The notes beneath the pieces are model-generated. The model made no database searches. It was not told where the DNA came from and worked only from the letters and a program-made list of their open reading frames with translations. The translations under genes were made by a program, and so were the position numbers. This document shows positions 7,713-62,572 of a DNA stretch of 64,000 bases, in pieces. Source of the DNA: Dimorphilus gyrociliatus (taxonomy: Eukaryota > Animalia > Annelida). The stretch covers positions 124,001 through 188,000 of the forward strand of contig CAJFCJ010000013.1 in the NCBI GenBank assembly GCA_904063045.1. The letters are read 5' to 3'. Each line of letters starts with the position of its first letter. Positions within the stretch are counted from its first letter, which is position 1.

Positions 7713-8727
7713 ATGATTTTCAAGTATATTCATCATGCTATCAGTATTCTTGTTTTTGCTTGTTTTATCTCATCTTCTTCTTCCTCAGGTAAAAATTCTC
7801 TTCAAGATCGTAAATCTATCCTATCAGCTTTTTATTGAAATTAAAATCTGAGAGACAGAGAGAGACAGAGAAAATTTCTAAATTAAAATTCATTTAAAAG
7901 GTTTTAAAGGAGAAAAGGGAGAAACTGGACTAAGAGGTGATTTTATTTTGTATTCTATTTGTAGAGCTATAATATCTAGGTCTAAACATGCTACATATCA
8001 ATCCTTTCCTAAGGTATTAAAGGTGTGAAAGGGCAGAAGGGAATGGATGGAGAACACGGTTTTAAGGGGGAAAAAGGAATGAAAGGAGACTATGGCGATA
8101 TCGGTCCACCAGGCTTACCAGGTATAATGGGAAGAAAAGGAGATGAAGGAAAAATGGGCCTGCGGGGTTTACCCGGAATTGAGGGAGAACTTGGTCTTCA
8201 AGGACCGATGGGAAAGAAAGGGGACAAAGGTAAATAGATTAATGAGCTTGAAATGTATTATTCATTATTTGAAGATGTTAGGCGATAGGGGTGAACATGG
8301 CTTAACTGGGCCTAGTGGAGAGAAAGGTCCGGCCGGCGCAAAAGGCTCTCAAGGTTTAGCTGGAAAAAAAGGCGCGAGAGGTTGGAAAGGTACGCCAGGT
8401 TCCAAAGGCGACAAGGGCAATTCTGGTCCAATAGGTCCAATGGGTCCAGTAGGTCCAATCGGACCTTCTAATCGTCCCGGTCAACGAGGTCCACCAGGAC
8501 CGCCTGGCAAATGTACTAATAAGAATCTTCATAAAATATTGATAATAAGCGCCGGAAGTTCACTAATAATGATCATTCTTTGGCTAACTATATTAACAAT
8601 ATACCTAATAAGTAAATCTCGTATGAAACGGGAAAAGAAGCGCGAGAAATCTCCTAGTTTGTACCTCGAAGCGACGACAAACCAATTAAATCATCAGTTG
8701 GAGTATATAAATGATAAAAATTTTTGA
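7713..8727 (+). CDS. Type I membrane collagen-like protein 2 (257 aa): signal peptide, ~53 Gly-X-Y triplets with one interruption, TM helix, cytoplasmic tail. Exons 7713-7788, 7901-7936, 8014-8229, 8282-8727
   Basis: Signal-like [25 protein letters not shown]. The internal collagen exons are 36 and 216 nt (multiples of 9) with phase-1 junctions inside Gly codons. [27 protein letters not shown] is followed by basic [13 protein letters not shown]. Confidence 0.85.
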
Positions 8728-18803: not shown

Positions 18804-20514
18804 TTATTCGTTATCTTCGTCATCTTTATCATTTTCCTTCTTTTCCTTTTTCTTGTCCTCTTCGATCTCTGGATCCTAGAAAAGTTAAACAAAAATGTAT
18901 CTCTTATAAAACAATTTTATGACTTCAATATTTAATTACAGTTTGAGATTCAGTTACTTTCATATTCGATTTGATCTCATCAAAGCAGCTGTCGCAAGCT
19001 TCTTCATATACTCTTGACAATTCATCTAGAACATTGTTTATAATTTCGTCGGTTTGAACTCCCCAGGAAGCATGGGAATCTTCTTCTGACCTAAACCAAA
19101 CATTAGGAAATTATTAGTGTTAATTCTAAATTATTCTCTGCTGGCCTTCTGTGAAAAAAATTAAAAGGATTGATTTTACTTAATTCAATCGGTTTAAGAG
19201 TTAAGAAGCTAAGGAAAAATTAGATATTATTGCAAAAAAAGAAAAAAACATCTACATATTTTATACATTAGTTAAGACTGATTTTGAAAGTACGAACCCT
19301 TTTAGATTTTTGTTAGGAAACCATATGTCAAAGTATTTCCAAATTTGATTGTTAAATGGTTCCAGATCAATGGATTTTTGGTGGGAAGTGTTTGATTCTT
19401 TGTGAGATCTTCTTGAAGTGTAAGGATGGAATATTTTCCTAGATCTGTGATGTAGACTCTTCAGCGACGGCCATACCGGGTCATCGTTATAATTATCTTT
19501 AGTCAATAGAAGATCTAAGGTCCCAAGATCGCGGCAGTCGTTCTGGGTGAACACTTTTCGGCTCTGCTCTATTAGGCTCGCTTTCAGAGGGACATTTTCT
19601 GTATTTTTGTCACCACTTTTGTAGTCAATTTGTGGAACGTATTTGTCATCGAATGGATTAGTTGGGTGATGCGTTGGTCCGTGGGAACCTAAAAGGACGT
19701 ATCCTAGGGTCCATTCTGAACTCACGTTACTGCCACTATGATTATTTTCGTTCCACTGCTCACCATTTGCTGTTACAGATGTTGATGAGCATTCTTCAGA
19801 TTCTTCACTGTCTTTTTCAAGTTTATCAGCTTTATCTTGCTCATAAGTAGATAAAAGATCGGAAGATGAAATTCCATTATATTGTGTTGCTCCCTTGTCT
19901 TCACTTTCTGAATCGCATGAATATAACTCCTCAGCCTCATTTTCAATATCATCCATCGTGGATTCGTAGTCACCTTCTGTCTGTTTTTTCTTCCCTTCTT
20001 CATCCTTCTCCTGCTCTCTCTGTTCTTGATGTTTGTTCTCTGAAGAATAAGTCTGAGCTCTTTCCTCGCATCTTTTAACCAATGAACTCTTTAATTCAAA
20101 GAACTGATCTCTTTTAGTTCTTAAAATCTTACGCATTTCCTTCAGCTTTTCCAACATTGACTCGAAATCTTTCATTAGATCTGACAGTATTATAATAAAA
20201 AATTAACAAAATAAAAAAGAAGTTAATTAAAGTGTATATTACTGTCAAAATTATCGATATCGAAAGGAGTTTCAGAAGGGTCGTCAACCGAATCACTAGT
20301 GATTTCCGACAAATCGGGGTCTTCGTTAAATTCATCGCTAAAAATTATCAGTCATCAATATGAAATACATATTTTTGTATGATAAATTGACTTACAGCTT
20401 GCTCTGTAGACTAGCTATTGACTGATCTAACTGCTGCATCTCACTTTCTGCTTTCCTGATCAACTTATCAAAACTCTCTATGAGATACGTACAAGTTTCA
20501 CATTGGGAATCCAT
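18804..20514 (-). CDS. Unassigned acidic coiled-coil protein (orphan C, ~435-440 aa). Exons 20514-20396, 20337-20243, 20180-19298, 19090-18940 (or 18958), 18875-18804
   Basis: Phase-compatible GT-AG chain of 1320 nt. Heptad-like N-terminal segments (FDKLIRKAESEMQQLDQSIASLQ; LMKDFESMLEKLKEMRKILR) and CxxC pairs near both ends (CETC, CDSC). The exon-3 donor (GTTCGT) is less certain. Confidence 0.65.
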
Positions 20515-22168
20515 CTTTTTTTCTCAAACAGCTATTGACGATATGCTTTGTCCTGTAAAAAAAACAGAAATAGTATTATAATTTATAAATTGCCGCCGAA
20601 ATAGTTATTATTCACAGTATTTTCGAGATAGTACTGGCTTGTATAGGAAGTAGAGAGAAAATATTTTTTTTATAAAATGCTCTCTCTGATGTTGGAGGCG
20701 AAATAATAATTATAAATTACTAATCTTATTACTCCTGCAAGCTCAGCGTTTAGAACTGGTAAAAAATATCTATTTATTAATTAATATTCATTAGTTGATA
20801 CTTACCCTGACTGTGAATAATTACAATATTCTTTAAGAAATAGTTCTATTAATTACGTTTTATTACGTTTTTCTTTTTACCTCGCAACATATATAAGCTT
20901 TTGTTAGTGTTCTTGTTAAAATGCTAATTAAGAATGATAAGAATCAAACTATTCTTTATTTCGTAATGTTAATCTTTAATTGAAAGTAACAGAACATTTT
21001 GTAGCTCGGCTATAAGATAAAAAATATTCTTTTTTCAACCATAAAAAACATAAAATAAAAACTAAAAGATTAAAAAAGAGACATTCGCCTAATAATTTAC
21101 AGTAAGAGTGTTAAATTTACAGATGTTAGTCACATGCTTGGAGCAACGTTTTCATTTACCTTTTCTTGATGAAACAACTCGTTGAAGGCCTGATATTATC
21201 CTGGGAGGGGGGAACGGCGGGTGGTGATGGTCAGAAGTATTACAAGGCGTTTGACCTTTCCGAAACCTAAATGTTGTTAGATATATTTCAAGTTTGTCAA
21301 TAGTAACAATAGTATGAATATACCGTATAAATATAGAAACCAGGATCCGACTCTTTCCGACCGGTAAAACAATTCCACTTAGCTCTTTTAGACCTATGGT
21401 CTCGCTAAGAATTAGAAAATGCGCCAAAGTGTTTAATTTCAACACCTTAAATCAATTACATTATTGTATAAGGTTTGTTATAGCCGCTTGTCAGCTTTTT
21501 TGACAATTTAGCCTAGAAAAAACTTTATTGGCCTATAGTTTTGTGGCCTATTATTTACCGGTTGTGATTAAATACGGGCCTATTATTCATTAAATTATAA
21601 ATTATAAAATATGCAAAATATTTTTTATTTTACTTTTTAATACCAATGTTTTTTTATTAATATTGAATAGTAAATATTATAATTAATTTTTTGCCTATTT
21701 TTACCTGTTTCCGCCCTTTTTGTCCATGCCTTTATTGGTGCTATAATTAAACTCGTTCAAGAGGAAAAAGTTAGTTTTTTAAATTATTTTTTTCAGTAAT
21801 ATTCTCAAAAACGCATTTAAGTTATGAATTTAACATATATTTAATATTTCGCGTAAAAATATTTTAAATAATTAGCGAGAAATAATGAAATTATAAGTCA
21901 TAAGTAATTACGTGCCTTGAAAAAGTCAAAATGGACGACTTTTTTTTTAGTTGATTATTCACATTCTAATTATTAGTACTGCAATAAGTTTAAATATCTC
22001 AAGAAATAAGCTACTAGCTTTTGTTAAAAGAAACATATAATGAATTTGCATTTGGGAACTTTTTTGGTTTTTATGACCAAAAATAAAACTTATATTTTAG
22101 TTTATTTTTGTGTTTAGATATCAATATCTCTTTCGCTTTGCTATTGACAAGTATCCTATCACTTCGAA

Positions 22169-24320
22169 ATGCCACGGGCTTGTGCAATTCGCCATTGTCG
22201 AAGCAATTGGAAAAAAGAATTGACTTCTTCATTTCCTGTGCCTGGCTTCTTCACTCCTTTGGAATTTAGTAGGCGTGCTGCCTGGATTAAAGTTTTACAA
22301 GAAGGCAGTTTTGTGAAAAGCCCTACTTTGGGAGATCATATATGCTCTTTACATTTTCAAAGTGGTCAGTTTCAAACAATTAATCTTTTAAAATATTTTC
22401 GAAATATTTATTGTAGGTAAACCTGCTTCGCCGCACGACGTTGATGATACTGATTGGGCCCCTAGTATATTTGTGCCTCCACTGACTGTTAAGATCATGT
22501 CCAAATTTTTCGATAGAGAATTAATTCTAGCTAATACGAAAGCTATTATGTTAAGAGAAACACCTTCTGGAATATTATTTATTCGTCAAAATTTCAGAAG
22601 TTATGAATCCGCCGTATCATCCACATTTGGATTTCCCAATGTCGGGAAAATGCGCTTCTTCCTTCGGCGATTAATAAGAGATATTTCTCCAGTTCAATTT
22701 TTTAATCAGACAGCTTACGAACAAGTGTTATTGTCTTTAACTTATGTTTGTCATTTCATTACGAAAGGTCATATTGATGGTTTAAGCGCAAGCCCATTGC
22801 CACATCTCTCTCAATTTTGGTTGTGTTTGATAAGAAGAAATTTAGAAGTAGTATTGCAAATTTTAAGCACGAAAAAATCTTCTAAGATAATAGAGAGAAT
22901 TCACGACATATGCAAAACAGACGTCGTGGTCTTGGTAAAGGAATTTAAGTTGCTCGTATCAGGTAAAGCAGTCAAAATGCTTATTGGAGTAACATTATCA
23001 GATCAGATATGTTATATCTCGCCGTTATATTCGATAAAACAGTCAATGGAAGATGCAATGAATAAATACGGACTTTCATTGCTTATTGATTACAATGGAG
23101 TTGTAATTGGTAAAGCAGAAGGATCGAAAAAGTTGGTTTATAAAAAGTTTGATTTACCCGGTGGAATGTTTTGGGGCATACCTGTGAAATTTGAGAATTT
23201 TAAGAGTCTGAATGAATATATTGAAAAGATTTTTAGCTCAATACTTGAAAGAATGAATAATATTCAAAAGAGTATGAATGTTCATAATGGTGGAACAATT
23301 AAGACATTTAACTTTGCTGGCATCAGCCTTTACACTTACTTTTTGATTACTGAAGTCAACAGGATCCTCACTCAAGGTATACACGACTACTTTAAATATT
23401 TTTATTAATCTTTAAACCAATTTCACATATAACATGTTAGAAGTATTTTTCCTCCAATAGATGACAGCGAAACATTTTACAACTTAATGGAGAATTTTAA
23501 TAACAAAAGCCGTAAGAGACTAACTGATGTAGAGAACAAAATAGCTGAGCACGATCATTTAATTGAGGTTGAAAACGCTAATAGTATGCATTTTTCATCT
23601 GAAGCAGTAGTTTCTGATCAAGGAAGGGTTGTTGATACTCTTATGAATACTGATGTTACAAACAATGATATTTCTACAGAAGAAAACTTAAATACTATTA
23701 CCGTGAAACTACTGTATCCGCCACCAACTGATAGCAAACAAGACAATTTAGTCGACAGTAATTCGGTACCCAAAATATATTGCGGTAACACAGAGTTTAT
23801 GATATCTGAAGGACAAAGAAACCATACTAGGAGCGAAAACTCTGATCCTAATTCAGTGAAAATAATTTATTCAGACCCACCTATTAATACGTGCGATAGC
23901 TTACTGGTTAGTGATTCAGTCCCATCAAAAGATTCTTTCAGTACGAAGCGTAGTCTAACCAAAAGCCTGGGAAAGGTTTCAAAAGAAAAACATATTGATA
24001 ATCTTAATTTGAGAATAATTTTTTTAAACTCATCTGTTAGCCCAAGCAATAATTTAGAGAGCAGTCCTTTAGTGACAACCCTCCGAAACTCAGCTGGTGT
24101 TGAATCTTATTCTCAAAAAGATACAAATATGACACATACAGCTAATGGGGCAGAAGAAAATAGTTTAGGTTCGGGTTCGAATGGTACTGAATCTCACTCT
24201 CAAGATTCTATAAATATTGTAACAACTGGCGTAACAGAAGAAAATAATTCGGATTCCGGTTCAAATTCAGGTTCTAACTCAGGTTCTAAGTCAGAAGGTG
24301 CTGAATCTTCTTGTGAATAG
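22169..24320 (+). CDS. THAP-domain protein with a degenerate ISL2EU/Harbinger-type (HTH + DDE_Tnp_4-like) transposase region and a low-complexity tail (671 aa). Exons 22169-22364, 22417-23376, 23461-24320
   Basis: THAP C2CH: CAIRHC...RRAAWI...HICSLHFQSG|KP...DWAPSIF across a 52-nt intron. Then TFGFPN, EQVLLSL, VVVLVKEF, VKMLIGVT..QICYISPLYS, GLSLLIDYNGVVIGKAEG and GIPVKF are collinear with the recalled transposase motifs TGFPN, DQFFLTL, VIIDCTEI, KxLVGITPxGAISFVSxLYG, GxLxLLExGDxVMADRGF and NIPPF. Confidence 0.75.
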
Positions 24321-24760
24321 GAAACAAGTATGGCAGCTAAAGGTGGCGTGACAAAAGACAATAACTCAGGTTCTGCTTCGATTTTGGGCTCGGGTCCAGG
24401 CTCGAGTTCTGGCTCTGGGTCAGGCTCAGACTCGAACAGTACTAAATCTCATTATCAAGAATTTATAAATTTGACAGTAACAGCTAGTATATCAGAAGAA
24501 AATAACTCAGGTTCCGGTTGGATTCAGGCTCAGACTCTAACGGTGCTGAATCTTCTTGTGAAAAGAAAACAAGTATACCAGATAAAGCTGAAAAGAACTC
24601 ATCTTCGGGTAGTTCCCAACATTCTCAACTACAAATTTCCCAGTTAACGTAGTAGAAGAAAATCTCTCATGTTCTGACTTAGGTTCTTGTTCTCAAGAAA
24701 TTATAAATATGACAGACACAAATGATGTGACAGAAGGAAGTAACTCGGAATCGTATTTAA
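24105..24760 (+). repeat. Degenerate coding tandem repeat (about 6 units of ES-x-SQ..N..T....EENNSGSGS type)
   Basis: Recurrent nucleotide blocks such as GAAGAAAATAA(C/T)TC(A/G)G(G/A)TTCCGGTT and GGTGCTGAATCTTCTTGTGAA, each seen twice. Confidence 0.7.
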
Positions 24761-25453
24761 AACATGTTAAAATGATTTCTCTTTTGTCTGATGATAACAG
24801 CTCTGTTCTACCCAGTAATATTAATTTTCCTTTGGCTGGATCAAATTTTGAGAGTTATGAGTATCATTCTCAGCGACATGAAAGTATAGCAAAAGAAAAA
24901 GACTTAAAAAGAAAAGATCCCATCACTGATAATACTTGTTCGAATAATGAATCACGTGCTGCTTCAGATTCTGATGGTTCGAACATGTTTGCGAATATTG
25001 ACAATTTTGACGATTTCTTTAAAAGAAGTGCGACTTTGCTATCTATGAATGAAAACTCTGATTCTGAAGTAGATGGAGAAAATCTTGAATTTTATCCGCA
25101 ATAAATTGTAAGTGATGTAGGTAATCTTAGTGAAAAAGATAACTAGTCCCGTAAATGATAATAATTCCGCAGCGCACCTGATTGGCAGTTCCAGTAATTT
25201 TTCCATTACAAGTGATGCTGAAAGAGATTTAGATTGTTCTGGATCACGGAAAAAGCCTCCAGGCAGGTATGATTTTTTAAAAGACATCTTCCTGAAACAC
25301 CCATCTCAGGATTCCGAAAGCAGAGATAAAACTAATTATATCACTAAACGAAGAATTTATCTGATAAAGTTGAGAGCTATACGTAATAAAAGAAGTCACT
25401 CTTTAAAATTGTTTAACCCAGATGGCATACTTGAAAAGAAAATCGCGTGTTAA
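24321..25453 (+). pseudogene. Decayed former 3' extension of the THAP gene (Ser/Gly/Asn repeat units and Ser/Asp-rich coding-like sequence)
   Basis: ORF 24330 is in the same frame as the upstream ORF, past TAG 24318-20; the equivalent codon in the next repeat copy is AAG. The repeat reading frame then shifts near 24520, 24640 and 25130, with another in-frame TAA at 25102. Confidence 0.6.
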
Positions 25454-25574
25454 AGAATTTAGAGATGAGTCCTGGCTGTATTAAAGTATTTGTCTTTTTT
25501 TAAAAGACATTTTCTTGTAATTTGTTCGTCTGTTTTCTTCAGAAAATTGTTCAAGTTTGAAAAGAATTTACTTC

Positions 25575-25627
25575 ATCGCGTTTTTGGGCTTTACCGGTAT
25601 GAAAGAGCCAGAGCCCAAAAACGCGAT
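25575..25627. repeat. Perfect 16-bp inverted repeat with 21-nt loop
   Basis: ATCGCGTTTTTGGGCT (25575-25590) and AGCCCAAAAACGCGAT (25612-25627) are exact reverse complements. Confidence 0.9.
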
Positions 25628-25800
25628 TAGGATATAAAGATGGATAATGTATTGAAGAGCAGTTTACAAGATAATGAAAATTCAATATTCATACAGTGTA
25701 AAAAATGACTACTTTTTAGCTTGATGACAATGATTGTTTTCTTTTGTAAAGCTGAAGTCAAGAAAATTATTTTTAAAGATTTTGTTTGAATTATAGATTA

Positions 25801-26094
25801 TTAAATTTCTTTTGTTATGTCGCTTAAAGTTATTCTTTTGTCTGGAAAACAAAGTTCAAGTATTTTACTGATTATAAAATTAAACGCGATGAGAATCTGA
25901 AATAATTTCCTTTTATGAAATAAACACTTGCGATAAAATGATTCTAGCTGAGCTATTGCATGACAATATTGTAATCGAGATGTAAGATATTCTAGCGCAA
26001 TTTTATTTCGTTGACTAGGCATTTCATTAGTAACATTTGATGTGGGGACAAATAGAATATGATTTAATTGTGAAAAGTCTGTCATAGTAATCAA
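25801..26094 (-). CDS. Possible small unassigned ORF or exon, convergent with the THAP gene
   Basis: 97-codon open frame downstream of a promoter-like region at ~26.3-26.5 kb; no clear family. Confidence 0.3.
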   Translation of the reverse strand: MITMTDFSQLNHILFVPTSNVTNEMPSQRNKIALEYLTSRLQYCHAIAQLESFYRKCLFHKRKLFQILIAFNFIISKILELCFPDKRITLSDITKEI

Positions 26095-26277
26095 TACAAC
26101 AACATAAGCAACCTTTGCAATTACAGCTGAGTGAAGGATTTAATGTAAAAACAAAGTAAAATATGTTTGAAAATTTATTTACGTTGTTAACTTGAATATA
26201 AAAGAAATAAATGTTTGAACAGTTTTCGATCTCAACTCAAAGGCAGGCAAAAAAAAATTGAATTCGCCACAAGTTGA

Positions 26278-26442
26278 TGACGTCAAATTGAGGGATTTTG
26301 CAGCAAAACGTGTCGTAAAAAGTTACTAAAGTAAGTTTTTTTAATGTAGGAATATTTAAAAAAAAATGAAACTGTTGAAATATTAATATTATATTTTTAC
26401 GAATTCAAAAGTTGAGAAAAAAATTGACCAATGATTACGTCA
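26278..26442. promoter_or_regulatory. CRE-type sites (TGACGTCA 26278, TTACGTCA 26435) and CCAAT (26428) between divergent ORFs
   Basis: Motifs read directly; function inferred. Confidence 0.4.
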
Positions 26443-27720
26443 CAATAAGAGGAAATAAATAGCGAGAACCATGCTATTCTGCGTCCTTTCGGAGCCGAGC
26501 TTGGTTGCACTGCCATATTTTGAACTGTTTTTTTATAAAACGTTCAATTTAGAGGTATTATTTTATTTTTAAGTATTTATTTTGTATGGAAAGTGTTAAC
26601 ATATATTCAAAGAACATTTTAAACCTTTTTGCCAAAAAAAATTGTTAATTTTAAGACTAAAAATGCTACTTTTACTGTTCAGTAATCAACAACGAGTCGG
26701 CCATGACTGCAAGTCACTGTTGAAAATTGTTTAATTTTTTTCATGTATTACTTAAAAAGGCATATCTATCATGAAATTAAACTATATAAACAGCTCTATT
26801 AGAATAGTTTAATGGAAGAGAATATTATATAATAGAAATAGGCAAATTTTGAGAATAAAAGAACTGTCATCCTTATTGGACAATGATTATATGTGTTACA
26901 ATGTTATGACAATTATGTTTAATTTCATTTCTCTCTTTTTTCTATTTAAGGTCAAAGATAGTAGCCTAACGTTAAGACTTTCAATAAGAGAAGGCATAGA
27001 TCCTTGACGGTTTAAAGAATAAATTAGTTTGATAAATTATTAAAGGGTGAGTAGACATTTCTCATTTAGCTCTCCTTCCCAAACCCCAGCCCCTCTCCCG
27101 GCAAGCCTAGAAGGAACCACATAATACCTACAATGTTTTCAATAACAATATATTGAATTTTTTTTCCAATTATTGATCCAATGGTCGGAGGCTAAATCTT
27201 TGAGCCATAATCAGGAAGAGTACAGAATCTATAATAGTTGTCTGTTTTCTTTTATTTCTTTTATAAACGATTGAAAATTTTTTGAGTTATTAAATTTTAT
27301 TTCATTAAATCTTTTAAGAGGCTTTTTCCTCATTTATAAAAATAGACATATATTTATATATATACTGTAAAATGTATATATATTAAATAATCCTATATAT
27401 AGTTATATAGGTAGAGATGTGTTTATTAATTTCTATAATTAAGTAAAGTATGAAATTTGACCTCTTTTTTTTTCAATTGTTCCTGCCAGTAAAGTCTAAC
27501 TAATATGCTTTTCTATTAAAAAGCGATGCTTTTATTCAGCGTAATCATTCGATAGCTTTGAAACAATGCAAAGAAACAAAAATAAATATATATATATATC
27601 TTCATTTCACTCATTCATATTTCTCTATACAATACAGAAATCAGTTAATAATCTTATTAATTTGTTAGTCCTTGAGAGATTTGTGAAAGAATTCTATTTG
27701 ATAATCTTAACGATAAGTAA

Positions 27721-29370
27721 TTGACCATGGATGATTTCAAGCAGCTAGAAACGATTTTAGAAGATATTGTTACTGTTATGAACGGCAATAATTTCCTTCC
27801 CGATTTAGATACATCGCTTTTTGGCTTAACGGAAGAAGAATTGACGAGGGATTATCCCAACGAAAAGTTAAAAGTTGATAGTGTACCGGAAAAGTCTTGT
27901 AATAATGAGATATCATCAGATTTGGATCTTATTTCGGACCTCGACTCTTTAACAGATTTACTTTCAACCCCGAAAAACTTTATGAATCAGTTCTGTAGGA
28001 CGGAAGCTGTTGATCGACCGACTTCGCTACCATTGTCACCTTTGGATTGTCAAGCTCCGGTTGATTATTTCGCTCTGAGTCCAATTATGTCGGTGTCGGG
28101 GAACGATTGCAGTATGAAAGAATTGGGATCTGTTAATAATAAGAGGTCTTTGGACGATTTAGCTGAAGAATATAATGTCAATATTGCAAAGAAACCGTGT
28201 GTAAATAACGTTGTTGTTGATGTTCCTGTTAGTCGAGTTCAACCGTCCGTTATTAGAACAGAGAATCGTGATCCAATTCGATTATCTTGCAAGCCTAAAT
28301 TAACTAATTCATGCCAAAATAATTCTTATGTTAGAAGTATTTGTTCACCATTCCATGGTGAATTGGCAAGGAAGAGATTAAAAGAGTACTATTTGTCGGA
28401 TGAGCCGAAAGCTACTATTTCGCCCATGTCCGATAAACCAGTTGTTGAGAAGAGTCCTACCGTTGTTTTGCAATATCGTCCTAGTGACTTAATTTCCGAT
28501 GGTCAGTCGCCACAGGCTAGTGAGCAACAAGATGGTCAACCGAAAAAAACTATAGGAGAGAAATTTGCGACTATTCGCGCGCTATTAAGCCAACAGAGTT
28601 CAAATATCGTAGCTAGAGTAATAGGAAAGCAAAATACTTCTGTTGATAGATGTCAACCTGTTCAAATTCAAGCTGAGGTAGCCGAAAAAATTTTTAAGGA
28701 TCAATCAGACAATTTACAGGCCGAACTTGAGAGAACTGCAAAGAAAGCCGAATCTGGAACTTTAGTTGAACCGGGTGAGAATCTCAGCCAAATACTTTCC
28801 GATTCAACGGAAGTTCAATTGGAGATACCGCCGGATTCGGATGACGATGAGTCTGTCATCGTTCAAATTATTATGGAGCCTAATAAACCTCGAATTGTAG
28901 GTATTTCCCGATGTAGAAAGAACGTACTGGTTAACACGAGGTTAACTCGTGAGCAGATAATGCAACGATTCGAAACATATTTTGAAGGTCACCCACTACC
29001 GTTGATACCCTATGTTCCAACGTATTCCGAGTGGGCGGCCTGGAAGATGGGACAATATAATTTACCAGATTACAAGTGCGTTTGGAAACCATTCACCACA
29101 ATGACCCGACAGCATTTTGAACAATTTCTAAAATCGTCGGAGCTTGTTGATGTAAGCGTTGAAAAATATAATGAACGTCCCCCAATTTCGATTGTTCAAT
29201 ATTTACTCACGTTAGACAGGCGAATTGCTATGTTACAGACGGCATTTTTGCAGTTAGAGGACGGCGATGTAAAGAGTATAATTCCAGAAATAATAACAAA
29301 GGCTTACCAAGAGTATTTGAACTGTAAGAGAAAAAATTTTCCACCAGAGTTTATTGAACGAAGTGTTTAA
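27721..29370 (+). CDS. Unassigned intronless ~547-aa protein (probable start ATG 27727); long acidic/Ser-Pro-rich N-terminus, ordered-looking C-terminal ~170 aa
   Basis: 549-codon uninterrupted ORF, far beyond chance length in this AT-rich DNA; no family recognised. Confidence 0.8.
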   Translation: MTMDDFKQLETILEDIVTVMNGNNFLPDLDTSLFGLTEEELTRDYPNEKLKVDSVPEKSCNNEISSDLDLISDLDSLTDLLSTPKNFMNQFCRTEAVDRPTSLPLSPLDCQAPVDYFALSPIMSVSGNDCSMKELGSVNNKRSLDDLAEEYNVNIAKKPCVNNVVVDVPVSRVQPSVIRTENRDPIRLSCKPKLTNSCQNNSYVRSICSPFHGELARKRLKEYYLSDEPKATISPMSDKPVVEKSPTVVLQYRPSDLISDGQSPQASEQQDGQPKKTIGEKFATIRALLSQQSSNIVARVIGKQNTSVDRCQPVQIQAEVAEKIFKDQSDNLQAELERTAKKAESGTLVEPGENLSQILSDSTEVQLEIPPDSDDDESVIVQIIMEPNKPRIVGISRCRKNVLVNTRLTREQIMQRFETYFEGHPLPLIPYVPTYSEWAAWKMGQYNLPDYKCVWKPFTTMTRQHFEQFLKSSELVDVSVEKYNERPPISIVQYLLTLDRRIAMLQTAFLQLEDGDVKSIIPEIITKAYQEYLNCKRKNFPPEFIERSV

Positions 29371-58100: not shown

Positions 58101-61100
58101 CGAACGTATAAGATTTATGTTTATTTAAATAAATATATATCTGTATATATATATATATATCTGTATATATATATATATATATCTGTATATATATATATAT
58201 ATATCTGTATATATATATATATATATTTATATTTTGCTACTACCTGCCCGCGCATTGAAAAGACTTCTTAAAAGTTTACTTGCATCTAACAACAAAGCTA
58301 CACCAATTATCATTTTCTTTCCCTTTATATACTATTCCTTTAAAACTATAAGAAAAGGGGCTATTAAATTAAATTATTAATATTTATACATTTATTTAAT
58401 ATCTTAATATTTATATATATATGCATATATATTCAGATGTCATAAGATTCTATTTACATGTATCATCTATATGTATATATATCTAAAAGTATATATTTAT
58501 ATTTAATACTACCATTCAGGCTTAATTAACTACTCTAAAAGAAAACGCTTAACAATTTGAATGCGCATTTGAACAAAAGTATTCAATACAAGCAAATAAT
58601 TAAATTCTCCGAAATACAATTATAAACTTAATAATTATAGACAATTTTAAAATTAATAAACGATTAATAATTATTCTTTGGAAAATATAAGAATTAAAAT
58701 TGCTTACTGCTAATCAACTATTTCTCTATTATCTTAACTATTATTGCATATACATATATATATATATTTTAAACAGATTTATATAAATGTATATTTATTC
58801 GTACTTGTGTATATACCACTTTTTCATGGTTTTTTATTTTGCTCTCTTTCTCTTTATTTTTTTCTCCATGTAAAAATTCTTTAGAAATAAGCAAAAGAAA
58901 TTGGTGTCACTCTATAGTGAGATATATTTAGTCAGCACATCCCGGAATGAACCAATCACGTAATAGGCAATTTTCGTGCTATATCGAACGGAAGCGACAA
59001 AAATCATCGTTATTAGCGTTTTCTAAGAATATTTTTTCTTCTCTCTTTGGTTTGCAGTTCTCGACGTATTTTATTTATATTATATATATATTATATTTAT
59101 ATTCATATTGGTATTCATATTATTTATTCCGAAAACAAAACAAAAAAGCCATAAAAATGACAAAAATCAATTGAATTTATGAAGATACAAGTCCTTTCTC
59201 TCCCCGTCCAATTCCTTACATTCCGTTCGAAAAGAAGAGGATATATTTGTGTCGGTGCAATATCGGTGTACATCATGGGGAGGGCGGGTTATGGCGCGCG
59301 GCATGTAGTAGGCGTATTATTGTGTGCTTTTATTGGCTGTTTTTTTTCCTTTTTCCTCGTTTATAAACATTAATATATACATCATAATGTATATGTCTAT
59401 GGGTATAAACGCTTGTGGTGATGTTATATTTTCCATCGTCGTCGCCGTTGCTGTTGTTTTTTTTATTATCAGTACGAGCGTGCTTTTTTATAGACTAAAA
59501 GTAATAATAATAACGTACTTTTCTACTAAAATTTAATAAGATGATAGTTAAATATTAAATTTACACAAGCATATATTTTATTCTGAACTTGATAAAATTT
59601 AAACAATTTATATATATATATATATATATAAAATAAGGAATATACTGTATAAATAGTATGTATATTAACAGAAAGATAAAAAAGAATATGTTTGTGTACT
59701 TTATAAATAAAGTAGTGATTTTCTTTCATACGGTAGATAAATTAGTGGCGATTAAAACTCGTTCGTGCGGATAACAGTTGTTTTTAAATCAATTTGAGGT
59801 AGCGACGTAATCCGTGATTTGTTTACGTTTCTAATCTATGCTCGGGCGTTATAAATATATATTTTTGACGGTCGCGCGCCATTCACAGACCCCTCGTCCT
59901 CGACGGCACAAATCAAAGCCGAACGGCCACCATCCAACTCTTCAACAGCGTCCTCTTCTTCGGCAGCCTTCCTAATGAATTCAGGAGTAAAGAAAGAGTC
60001 ATCGACAAGTCAACACCAAACACCTCCGGCCGCTGTTGCACCGCAAGCGGTCGTCTCTCAGCTAAACGGCTTCTTCCCCCCTCCGGTCTCATCTCTGGCG
60101 CCAGCCGCCCTAGTTCCGCCCGCTCACCATCCAGCGGCAGCCCTATTTTTTTCCCCTCACCTACCTCCGCTCTTGCCGCCTACTCATTTCGGATCGATTG
60201 CACCAGCTCTACTGCACGATCATTTACTACGGCCTCCAACTCCGCCAACCTCCGTGCCGTCGACGGCTCCACCGCCGTCCCAATCGCCTCCTAATGACGC
60301 CCTCGATACGGCCGACGTGGCGCAAAAAATTAGAGAAATACTCTCTACACACAATATCGGCCAGAGGTTATTCGCTAAGCACGTACTAGGACTGTCTCAG
60401 GGTACGGTTAGTGAATTGCTGTCGAAGCCGAAGCACTGGGACAAATTGACAGAAAAGGGCAGGGAAAGTTATAGAAAGATGCACGCTTGGGCTGCTAGTG
60501 AGAAAAACGTTGTAGAACTGAAGGCTATTTCTCCAAAGAAAGGTATTGGAAAAACAATCAGTTGCAATTCCTTATCGTTCTCTTCTAATACTGTAGTTCC
60601 GGCAGGTTCCTCACCTATGATGTCGAACTATCGGAGCGAAGATGCTGCAACAGAGGAGAGAATTCAAAAAATTTTGTCTGAGGCGCATCATGCAATGCAG
60701 GCGAAGCATTCGCAGGAGAAAGAACAATGGAATCGTTCAATAGTTAGTTCTATATACGAACAAGAATTAGCCAAATTGGGCGAGAATGGGAAAATAACAA
60801 ATGGTGTTAACTCGTTATCCGGCCAGCAATACGACGCTGGTGAATTTACAGAGCAACTTGTCCAAAGAATTTATCAGGAACAATTAGAAAAGATGATAGC
60901 TCACGCTCGAAAGAGTGGAAATGTGGCCCAATTGAATATGTACCAAGCAGAATTACTAAAAGTAGCCCAACAAGTTCACGCGAAAGGCAACAGTCCTCAC
61001 GAGGATAATAAAGAGAATTTAACGGATACAAAAGATGAACCAACTGATCTGAGTATCAAAAAGAAGGAGGAAACTCTCGCCGATTCTTCTCCAGCTGAAC

Positions 61101-62572
61101 GTCAGTCAGCTTTTTCAATAGTACGTCCGGAGAGCTGCCAAAGCAACGATTCATCTTCTCACAACGCCATGTCTCCTTTACAGAGAATGCAAAATATTGC
61201 CAATTCACTGATGAATAAAGGCCCAAACCAAGGCGGTACTGGAGGGCGACCCTTAAAAGCCGTACTGCCACCAATAACTCAGGAACAGTTCGATAAGTAC
61301 TCGCATATCGGTACGGACGAGTTAGTAAAGTGCGTCAAAGAGACTCTTAGTCAATTCTCGATCAGCCAAAGACTTTTTGGTGAAAACATACTCGGCTTAT
61401 CTCAAGGATCCGTTTCGGATTTGTTAGCAAGACCGAAACCTTGGCATATGCTAACACAAAAAGGACGAGAGCCATTTATCAGAATGCAGATGTTCTTAGA
61501 GGACACAGAATCCATATCAAAGTTGGTAGCCAGCCAGTATAGAGTTCCGCCTGAGAAACTATTGAGAGGGTCAATGGGTGACGAACCACCACCACCGCCA
61601 CCGCCACCACCCCCTCCCCAGAGTACCTCGTCCCCTGCAGAATCCGATTACAGACAGTCGTCCTCTTCGGTTGCCGATAGTGAATTGGATACTTTAGCCA
61701 TTACTTCGAAGGTGAAAGAGGTATTAACGGCCAACAATTTAGGTCAGAAACTATTTGGTGAAGCTATTTTAGGCTTGTCACAAGGTTCAGTTAGCGAACT
61801 ACTATCGAAACCAAAACCGTGGTCAATGTTGAGTCACAAAGGGAGAGAACCATTTATAAAGATGCATATGTGGCTTCAAGATCCTGCAAAATTTGACCGA
61901 CTTCGCCTCTATCAGTCGGAAACCCCAGCGGGCAAAAATAGTCGAAAGCGTAAACATCAATCTGCGATCATCTCATCGAATAGCAACTGCTGTGACAATA
62001 GCGCTTCATCTTCTGATAATCAGAAAAGACCGAGAGTATTCTTTACTGAACAACAAAAGGAAACTTTGCGCAATGCTTACGCTTCCGATCCTTATCCAAG
62101 TCAAAATGTTATCGAAAATCTGGCAAATCAATTAAACGTGGGTCAAAAGACTATCGTTAATTGGTTCCACAATCATAGAATGAGAGCTAAACAACAGCAA
62201 CACTCAGTATCTAGTCCCGCGTCATCTGTGTCTTCATCAGCTAGAACAGCTGCCGTCGATAGTGACGACGCTCCAAGCCCAGCCTCAACTGCTAGTTCGT
62301 CGGCTGGTGCTCTTACAAGGCCTTTAAATGACGCAGCTCAATGGCTATTTCCAGATTTCATGCCCGTAAAAGCAGAAAAAGCTGAAGAGGAGGAGGAAAT
62401 TGACGAAGAATCTTCAAATATGAACGTCACCGTTACAAAATCCAACAAGAGAAAGGCTGCAAAGCCCAAGCGTGTCTACGAGCGAGCAGAGCCAGAAAGA
62501 AATGGTGAGAGTTGGGATGATGAAGACGACGTGGGCTCCACATCTGGTCTCACCGTTGTTGCTGCATGCTAA
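46107..62572 (+). CDS. cux: Cut-like homeobox transcription factor (CASP-type coiled coil, 3 CUT domains, homeodomain), ~1290-1305 aa. Exons 46107-46163, 49106-49216, 51146-51272, 52503-52640, 53336-53603, 56715-56763, 56850-57333, 59889-62572
   Basis: N-terminus [19 protein letters not shown]|[11 protein letters not shown]...[15 protein letters not shown]|DPV...[17 protein letters not shown] matches the CUX1/CASP shared region. Three GLSQG(T/S)VS(E/D)LL(S/A)(K/R)PK.W CUT repeats; homeodomain [16 protein letters not shown]...NWFHNHRMR. The spliced length of 3918 nt is in frame. Confidence 0.96.
55378..55500. repeat. Imperfect (ATA/ATT)n trinucleotide tract in Cux intron 5; source of spurious Ile-rich ORF 55337-55543
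   Basis: Visible ATAATAATA periodicity. Confidence 0.85.
58132..58228. repeat. (AT)n tract punctuated by CTGT four times (higher-order microsatellite)
   Basis: Units of ATATAT...ATCTGT repeated in Cux intron 7. Confidence 0.85.

Follow-up and report, generated by a model that had tools for sequence, protein, structure and literature searches.

Transposases of the Harbinger and PIF groups have been domesticated as host genes repeatedly, and HARBI1, ALP1/ALP2, HDP1 and the DPLG genes of Drosophila are well-documented cases. In plants, the domesticated Harbinger transposases ALP1/ALP2 and HDP1 are found in complexes related to PRC2 and in histone acetyltransferase complexes, and in Drosophila the DPLG genes record the repeated domestication of PIF-like transposases (Casola et al., 2007), both as cited in PMC9179366. 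ISL2EU elements are defined by a transposase of THAP-helix-turn-helix (HTH)-DDE architecture and a second open reading frame (ORF) with a YqaJ domain (PMC4482050, PMC4122938). Here we describe DgyrCDS9271, a three-exon gene of the tiny marine annelid Dimorphilus gyrociliatus whose first two exons appear to descend from such a transposase. The gene lies within a stretch of 64,000 nt (GenBank assembly GCA_904063045.1, contig CAJFCJ010000013.1, positions 124,001 to 188,000 of the forward strand), which we refer to as the window and whose coordinates are used throughout. With a probability of roughly 60%, we interpret DgyrCDS9271 as a real single-copy gene with ISL2EU-derived exons 1 and 2, a catalytically dead core and a reading frame kept by selection, which now encodes a DNA-binding protein.

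A first-pass annotation, made from the letters of the window without database searches, had already proposed a domesticated, catalytically dead transposase with a THAP domain at this locus, and knew of no described host gene of ISL2EU origin. In the literature on ISL2EU, including that which treats it together with domestication, we did not find an ISL2EU-derived host gene either. This claim of novelty is qualified by a survey which lists THAP genes of Hydra and oyster with DDE_Tnp_4 or Harbinger-like parts as possibly co-opted, transposon-derived transcription factors (PMC10027918).

Gene structure and THAP domain

DgyrCDS9271 is encoded on the + strand (22169-24320). The splice sites were checked by hand and the frame adds up to 65+1+319+1+285 = 671 residues, so that the intact spliced frame with two phase-1 GT-AG introns read in the first-pass annotation is borne out. 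The public protein CAD5120710.1 (DgyrCDS9271, D. gyrociliatus) is 671 amino acids (aa) long, and its residues 67-385 are 100% identical to the translation of exon 2. Thus, the hand-read splice model is that of the published annotation. Both introns (Table 1) are of a size that fits the median intron of this genome, 66 bp (PMC7854359). The published gene models were built with transcript assemblies weighted 10x over ab initio predictions, and models matching transposons were discarded (PMC7854359); the DgyrCDS9271 model passed this filter. The G+C content of the window is ~33% and ~7% of random codons there are stops. By our own estimate from base composition, a 319-codon open frame would arise by chance with a probability of ~2e-11. 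In the searches described below the exons were used separately (22169-22363, 22419-23375 and 23463-24317), and whole-protein searches used CAD5120710.1.

The THAP zinc finger is complete, as had been read from the translation. The Pfam THAP model (PF05485) matches exon 1 with 28.3 bits (cut-off 23.9, E=3.1e-6) and the whole public protein with 25.3 bits over residues 5-66. The zinc ligands are C5-X4-C10-X48-C59-X2-H62 and fit the pattern C-X2-4-C-X35-53-C-X2-H. The conserved THAP residues P23, W39 and F63 are all kept, and the AVPTIF-type tail of the domain is present as WAPSIF (residues 79-84). At least 23 THAP-domain matches are found across the D. gyrociliatus genome, with clusters on contigs C26 and C14, and several of these matches contain internal stops.

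Homology of exon 2 to ISL2EU transposases

The ESM Atlas was queried with residues 190-385 of the public protein, i.e., with the THAP part excluded. The ten best named feature matches were all DDE_Tnp_4, with scores of 0.83-0.85, a range that is rated as leads. The Atlas's own model of the query reached template modeling (TM) scores of 0.62-0.66 over ~175 residues to DDE_Tnp_4 clusters. One of the structural neighbors is a 482-aa cluster, mostly from molluscs, that combines THAP, HTH_Tnp_4 and DDE_Tnp_4.

To obtain a comparison family, the motif around the second catalytic Asp, D-x-[IV]-M-A-D-[KR]-G-F, was turned into a degenerate pattern of 27 nt and searched for in metagenome contigs. The scan resulted in 120 loci, ~88 of which have ORFs of one family. 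All ten long ORFs tested carry HTH_Tnp_4 and DDE_Tnp_4 (E down to 1e-51), and seven of them include THAP as well. Of eight long ORFs that neighbor these transposases, seven encode a YqaJ exonuclease domain. Because the fetched loci combine a THAP-HTH-DDE ORF with a YqaJ ORF, the comparison elements are ISL2EU as published. Viral contigs scanned with the same pattern gave chance matches only. Two Harbinger-type remnants in the worm's own genome (see below) were tried as comparators and rejected as both too short and too distant; pairwise BLASTP was not significant and a word search from one of them was empty. Seven of the metagenome contigs (L033, L049, L107, L047, L067, L080, and L066) hold apparently complete ISL2EU elements with both ORFs. 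Many of these ISL2EU contigs come from a small number of host-associated sample series, which suggests the presence of invertebrate DNA in those samples.

Exon 2 was compared to this family with profiles. The alignment A1 consists of 25 long members, and A2 is the same 25 trimmed to the FYTG start of the family, which excludes any contribution of THAP. With HMMER profiles built from the 25 members of A2 or from 88 members, exon 2 obtained 12.1 and 11.8 bits, respectively (single-target E=6e-6). The match is made of two collinear domains, one over the FYTG/HTH part (i-Evalue 0.004-0.012) and the other over the beta2-beta3 part of the core (E=4.5e-5). Using hhalign, A2 aligned with exon 2 at P=0.0018 and a probability of 14.6%, pairing columns 161-200 with exon residues 181-220. 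Here the family reads h.T.K.LVGItP.G.isFVS.lygGs.SD...v..SG.L and exon 2 reads SGKAVKMLIGVTLSDQICYISPLYSIKQSMEDAMNKYGLS. When real ISL2EU transposases are used for comparison, HMMER, hhalign and MAFFT all recover the motif order that the first-pass annotation had proposed for the ~320 aa after the zinc finger.

Several controls address how often a score of this size occurs. Global shuffles of exon 2 reached the real score in 0 and 1 of 40,000 cases for the two profiles, an empirical p of ~1e-5 to 1e-4, and block-wise shuffles did so in 1/5,000. The reversed exon scored about -1 to -3 bits. As a natural control, stop-to-stop ORFs of 100 aa or more were taken from 264 kb of the D. gyrociliatus genome. 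Of these 203 ORFs, that of exon 2 came out on top at 11.8 bits, and the runner-up reached 3.8 bits. In the surroundings of the gene, 186 ORFs were scored and none but this one matched. The test is not circular, since exon 2 lacks the motif by which the family was fetched; and since the ISL2EU family had been proposed before testing, the comparison counts as a single test. The custom profile, which matches in the predicted register, and the DDE_Tnp_4 neighbors in the Atlas support the proposed origin, and judged from sequence the first two exons very probably descend from an ISL2EU-type THAP-HTH-DDE transposase.

Erosion of the transposase core

The ~265 residues that follow the THAP domain are collinear with the FYTG/HTH part and RNase H-like core of ISL2EU transposases in both MAFFT (--add) and global hhalign alignments, with three internal deletions. 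The identity of exon 2 to the family is ~16-18%. In the FYTG/HTH-type region, STFGFPNV pairs with FYTGFPNY of the family, and LSQFWLCLIRR pairs with the L..DEFFLVL.RLR helix of the family HTH. The deletions relative to the family are ~30, 15 and 14 residues long. The ~30-residue loss corresponds to the linker after the HTH. The ~15-residue loss falls in the loop with the invariant Ser-x-Tyr-Lys, in agreement with the earlier observation that the segment normally carrying YKxxNT is shortened.

The PHIS superfamily has the signature D..K..D..D..P..R...E (PMC4122938). In DgyrCDS9271 the first Asp of this signature has become Leu, the Lys Val and the middle Asp Met. Tyr or Lys stands at the position of the second catalytic Asp and Asn or Ser at that of the Arg, which leaves only the Pro and the Glu. 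Around the first catalytic position, KTDVVVLVKE pairs with P.TRVIIDCTE and the invariant Glu of the motif is kept. Both hhalign and MAFFT place a Leu at the Asp itself, so the first-pass reading of VVVLVKE for VIIDCTE holds. The invariant Lys of T.K.LVGI is likewise kept, and the conserved Asp of GGS.SD is replaced by Met. The second catalytic Asp had been assigned to IGKAEG. Its loss stands; MAFFT and global hhalign prefer another register, with LVYKKF opposite the family's MADKGF, and there is no Asp or Glu at either position. The Pro of NIP.F is kept in GIP. The Glu helix of the family pairs with YIEKIF or ILERM, the two segments in which the catalytic Glu had been suspected to survive, and it spans residues 261-289 of exon 2 in a low-confidence AlphaFold2 model (see below). 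The loss of both catalytic Asp residues is supported by these alignments. Since both are replaced along with most invariant residues, the protein is predicted to be unable to cut DNA by the DDE mechanism.

Table 1. Features of the DgyrCDS9271 locus, in coordinates of the window.
Feature	Coordinates	Strand	Description
Exon 1	22169-22364	+	65 codons + 1 base; most of the THAP finger (C5, C10, P23, W39, C59, H62, F63)
Intron 1	22365-22416	+	52 nt, GT...AG, phase 1; required by the public 671-aa model
Exon 2	22417-23376	+	319 codons; ends one base into a codon
THAP end with WAPSIF motif	22417-22475	+	start of exon 2; motif read in translation
FYTG/HTH_Tnp_4-type region	22584-22913	+	exon 2 residues 56-165; weak alone; HMMER domain 1, MAFFT --add
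Degenerate RNase H-like core (DDE_Tnp_4, ISL2EU-type)	22914-23375	+	exon 2 residues 166-319; hhalign, HMMER, ESM Atlas
First catalytic Asp position	22932-22934	+	Leu172 of exon 2 = Leu238 of the protein; global hhalign and MAFFT agree
Alternative register of second Asp	23112-23114	+	Lys232 of exon 2 (IGKAEG)
Second catalytic Asp position	23139-23141	+	Tyr241 of exon 2 = Tyr307 of the protein; LVYKKF vs MADKGF
Glu helix, sole surviving triad residue	23223-23249	+	Glu269 (YIEKIF, MAFFT) or Glu277 (ILERM, hhalign); exon 2 numbering
Intron 2	23377-23460	+	84 nt, GT...AG, phase 1; directly 3' of the transposase-derived core; required by the public model
Exon 3	23461-24320	+	286-residue tail; TAG stop at 24318-24320
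Repeat array beyond the stop	24321-25104	+	same frame open to 24647, then the repeat frame shifts
Inverted pair, left arm	21343-21368		26 nt, starts GG, 81% complementary, GC-rich; unique in the genome
Inverted pair, right arm	25590-25615		in loop and stem of the hairpin at 25575-25627; unique in the genome

Copy number, partner ORF and element ends

DgyrCDS9271 is single copy in the genome at E<=10, and no other match to the ISL2EU profile was found in the 78-Mb (77.9-Mb) assembly. The copy-number check suggested in the first-pass annotation thus gives a single copy and no dispersed ISL2EU elements. We did not find a match to YqaJ (PF09588) anywhere in the genome, nor a remnant of the partner gene when a profile of the YqaJ ORF was run over six frames of 19000-28000. 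Transposons make up 4.87% of the D. gyrociliatus genome, and the DNA transposons listed are Mariner and MULE only (PMC7854359). A genome-wide search with PF13359 did pick up two broken Harbinger-type DDE_Tnp_4 remnants, C149:20096-20404 and C289:4907-5341, with 48 bits each.

ISL2EU termini usually start with GG, and autonomous elements have a mean length of ~4.8 kb (PMC4482050). As in the first-pass annotation, no target-site duplication was found around the gene. The accompanying statement that no terminal inverted repeats were seen by eye holds save for one weak pair of 26 nt and 81% complementarity (Table 1). It encloses the gene with a span of 4,273 bp, and no other non-simple pair in the 64-kb window whose arms are 3-6 kb apart is of this quality. 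The pair lacks an adjoining AT duplication and the repeat does not extend beyond 27 nt. By its sequence, the pair may be what is left of the ancestral element's ends, or it may match by chance. The right arm overlaps a hairpin (25575-25627) with a perfect stem of 16 bp and a loop of 21 nt in the AT-rich intergenic DNA downstream of the gene.

The repetitive tail

The tail encoded by exon 3 is rich in Ser, Asn, Glu, Thr and Asp (D+E 42, K+R 23), and degenerate tandem repeats make up its end. Nothing equivalent is present in ISL2EU transposases, and the ORFs of the family end shortly after the core. Past the TAG stop, the same frame meets no further stop for 109 codons, up to 24647. The segments 24279-24345 and 24524-24590 are repeat copies with 81% identity; the later one carries AAG in place of TAG and lies in a shifted frame. 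Further + strand ORFs are located at 24709-25104 and 25130-25453, and an AATAAA is found at ~25103. The sequence from 24321 to 25104 probably once encoded protein and now serves as 3' untranslated region. More broadly, the stretch 24321-25453 resembles coding sequence eroding from its 3' end, or else an unannotated longer isoform.

Host gene or remnant

The locus has what is seen in domesticated transposases: it is immobile and single copy, the partner gene and apparently the element ends are lost, and the frame is open despite deep divergence. Given this divergence and the in-frame deletions, the lack of a stop in 671 AT-rich codons is not expected from neutral decay. We suggest that selection would have kept the frame open after the element became immobilized. 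Of the claim in the first-pass annotation that this is a host gene derived from an ISL2EU-type element, the origin, the lost catalysis and the finding that the locus is not a dispersed repeat hold up; the domestication step itself is plausible but unproven from the sequence.

The strongest alternative is an immobile single-copy ISL2EU remnant without a host function, which is decaying and whose frame, still open by chance, was picked up by the gene predictor. We consider this unlikely. A remnant would have to keep 671 codons open over three exons at ~33% GC, and to accumulate three in-frame deletions and the replacement of most invariant residues while acquiring neither a stop nor a frameshift over residues 1-385. 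It would also have two canonical introns of genome-typical size. The THAP signature is fully kept where the catalytic residues are lost, a selective pattern that is unlike neutral decay. A remnant would, on the other hand, account for the orphan state of the gene, which has no relatives in protein searches, and the transposons of D. gyrociliatus are reported to be of either great age or very recent origin (PMC7854359). Two features of the locus also speak for it and weigh against a host gene. The possible relic terminal pair is still 81% complementary, and if it does stem from the element's ends, the divergence of the protein makes the insertion look older than it is. The tail repeats run in frame past the stop before the frame is lost, which indicates that the last third of the protein, at least, is weakly constrained. 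A tail that was recently shortened and is weakly constrained, next to constrained first 385 residues, would describe the locus; the early decay of a remnant fits this equally.

Further results against the interpretation come from searches in which exon 2 gave nothing. Exon 2, its halves and exon 3 did not match any family of Pfam or NCBIfam at E<=10, including DDE_Tnp_4 (PF13359) and HTH_Tnp_4 (PF13613) for exon 2 and its halves. The profile match that the first-pass annotation had asked for is thus split, with no hit from the general Pfam model at E<=10 and 11.8-12.1 bits from the ISL2EU-specific profile; judged by the Pfam model alone, the proposal would have been refuted. Using phmmer, exon 2 found only itself and two chance matches among 1.84 billion representative proteins; both were driven by repeats and were rejected (a bacterial DUF7507 repeat protein and an amino-acid transporter). 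Word searches with exon 2 and with the public protein recovered the protein itself alone, and a sequence search of the PDB with exon 2 had no match. No orthologue was found among 15 billion public proteins. Genome-wide searches with PF13359, PF13613, PF04827 and profile A2 did not pick the locus, and since A2 gave no candidates the signal fails a blind whole-genome screen with that tool. For the structure prediction that had been proposed as a check, AlphaFold2 single-sequence models of exon 2 and of its last 166 residues have predicted local distance difference test (pLDDT) scores of 40 and 38 and are unusable, and Foldseek and VIA-align searches with them gave generic helical matches and no RNase H-like match. 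The low-confidence order of three strands, a helix, strands and a long helix is compatible with an RNase H-like fold and was given no weight. Finally, the probabilities from hhalign are only 12-15%, and the global alignment of exon 2 is not significant (P=0.097).

These results could also be read as a lineage-specific THAP gene with an unrelated middle domain, in which a beta-hairpin segment would resemble ISL2EU by chance or through its composition. Only ~40 residues align confidently, which together with the empty Pfam search, the low hhalign probabilities and Atlas scores in the range of leads favors such a resemblance. We nevertheless regard it as improbable. The family was named beforehand, the empirical p is small, and the exon lies 8 bits above every sampled natural ORF. 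The HTH and Glu helix segments are also present in the right order, and the Atlas query, which was free of THAP, gave DDE_Tnp_4 families only, by features as well as by structure. Moreover, a THAP-first architecture is what defines ISL2EU transposases (PMC4482050). THAP is common to the superfamilies of ISL2EU and of P elements and would allow for a derivative of a P-element/THAP9-type transposase, but this is very improbable, as no P-element Pfam family (HTH, RNase H, GTP-binding) and no paralogue in the genome was found at E<=10, and both the Atlas neighbors and the custom profile indicate DDE_Tnp_4/ISL2EU.

If DgyrCDS9271 is a host gene of ISL2EU origin, the THAP finger, perhaps together with the HTH, would bind specific DNA. 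The dead RNase H-like core could serve as a scaffold for dimerization or protein docking, as in ALP1 and HDP1, and the disordered, acidic Ser/Asn-rich tail, which would be evolving fast and lately shortened, may recruit partners. One possible role is that of a former repressor of its own transposon family. More tentatively, and with somewhat less than even odds in our view, the gene may be the first host gene derived from ISL2EU: a THAP-tethered dead transposase with gained introns and an acidic tail, acting as a sequence-specific regulator or ex-repressor in a genome otherwise purged of ISL2EU.

Other genes in the window

The genes that flank DgyrCDS9271 are located at 19261-20175 on the minus strand and at 27721-29370 on the plus strand. 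The window also contains a Cux-type homeobox gene (59975-62572), whose ORF runs for 865 aa without interruption and encodes three CUT domains as well as a homeodomain. An ORF with a CHORD domain is located at 1172-2239 and a short ORF with collagen repeats at 8143-8727.

Comparison with known systems

New regulators have repeatedly arisen from dead transposases that were reused to bind DNA or to act in chromatin, e.g., HARBI1, ALP1, HDP1, the PIF-derived genes of Drosophila and many THAP genes. A clean ISL2EU case, if true, would add a source family, and would do so in a genome with 4.87% transposons and no other trace of ISL2EU. It would also provide a compact system in which to ask what a dead RNase H-like core adds beside a THAP finger. 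There is a lesson in method as well: Pfam, phmmer against 1.84 billion proteins and alignment-free AlphaFold2 missed the relationship, and a subgroup profile and a protein language model caught it. The value of the case is limited because the gene is an orphan.

The transposases of ISL2EU elements (Han et al., 2014/2015; PMC4122938, PMC4482050) share with DgyrCDS9271 the order of THAP, FYTG/HTH and DDE_Tnp_4-type core, and the core is of similar length. Unlike them, the worm gene lacks both catalytic Asp residues, the YqaJ ORF, the AT duplication and further copies, and it has deletions, two introns and a low-complexity tail of 286 residues. The THAP genes of the Hydra and oyster survey show the same domain pairing and were proposed to be co-opted (PMC10027918). 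The survey went by domain content and apparently did not look at catalytic residues, copy number or element boundaries, so that many of its genes may be ordinary transposon copies. The worm gene is compared below with host genes of established origin.

HARBI1 keeps the DDE triad. It belongs to the Harbinger group, has no DNA-binding domain of its own, pairs with the Myb-like NAIF1 and is conserved across jawed vertebrates. DgyrCDS9271, by contrast, would derive from ISL2EU. Its triad is lost, its THAP domain is part of the same chain as the core, and we could find no orthologue of it. The two would have in common that they are single-copy host genes from a DDE_Tnp_4 transposase of the PHIS superfamily, in the case of HARBI1 a Harbinger transposase (Kapitonov and Jurka, 2004, cited in PMC5753468). 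The DPLG genes are lineage-restricted, single-copy invertebrate genes from PIF/Harbinger-type transposases and in this resemble the worm gene; they differ in being of the PIF group and not of ISL2EU, and in having orthologues across Drosophila under purifying selection. ALP1/ALP2 and HDP1 are plant proteins of the Harbinger group without THAP, whose partners and phenotypes have been demonstrated. They are alike in that Harbinger-type cores were reused as non-catalytic chromatin subunits, and it is this reuse that serves as the model for the proposed function of DgyrCDS9271.

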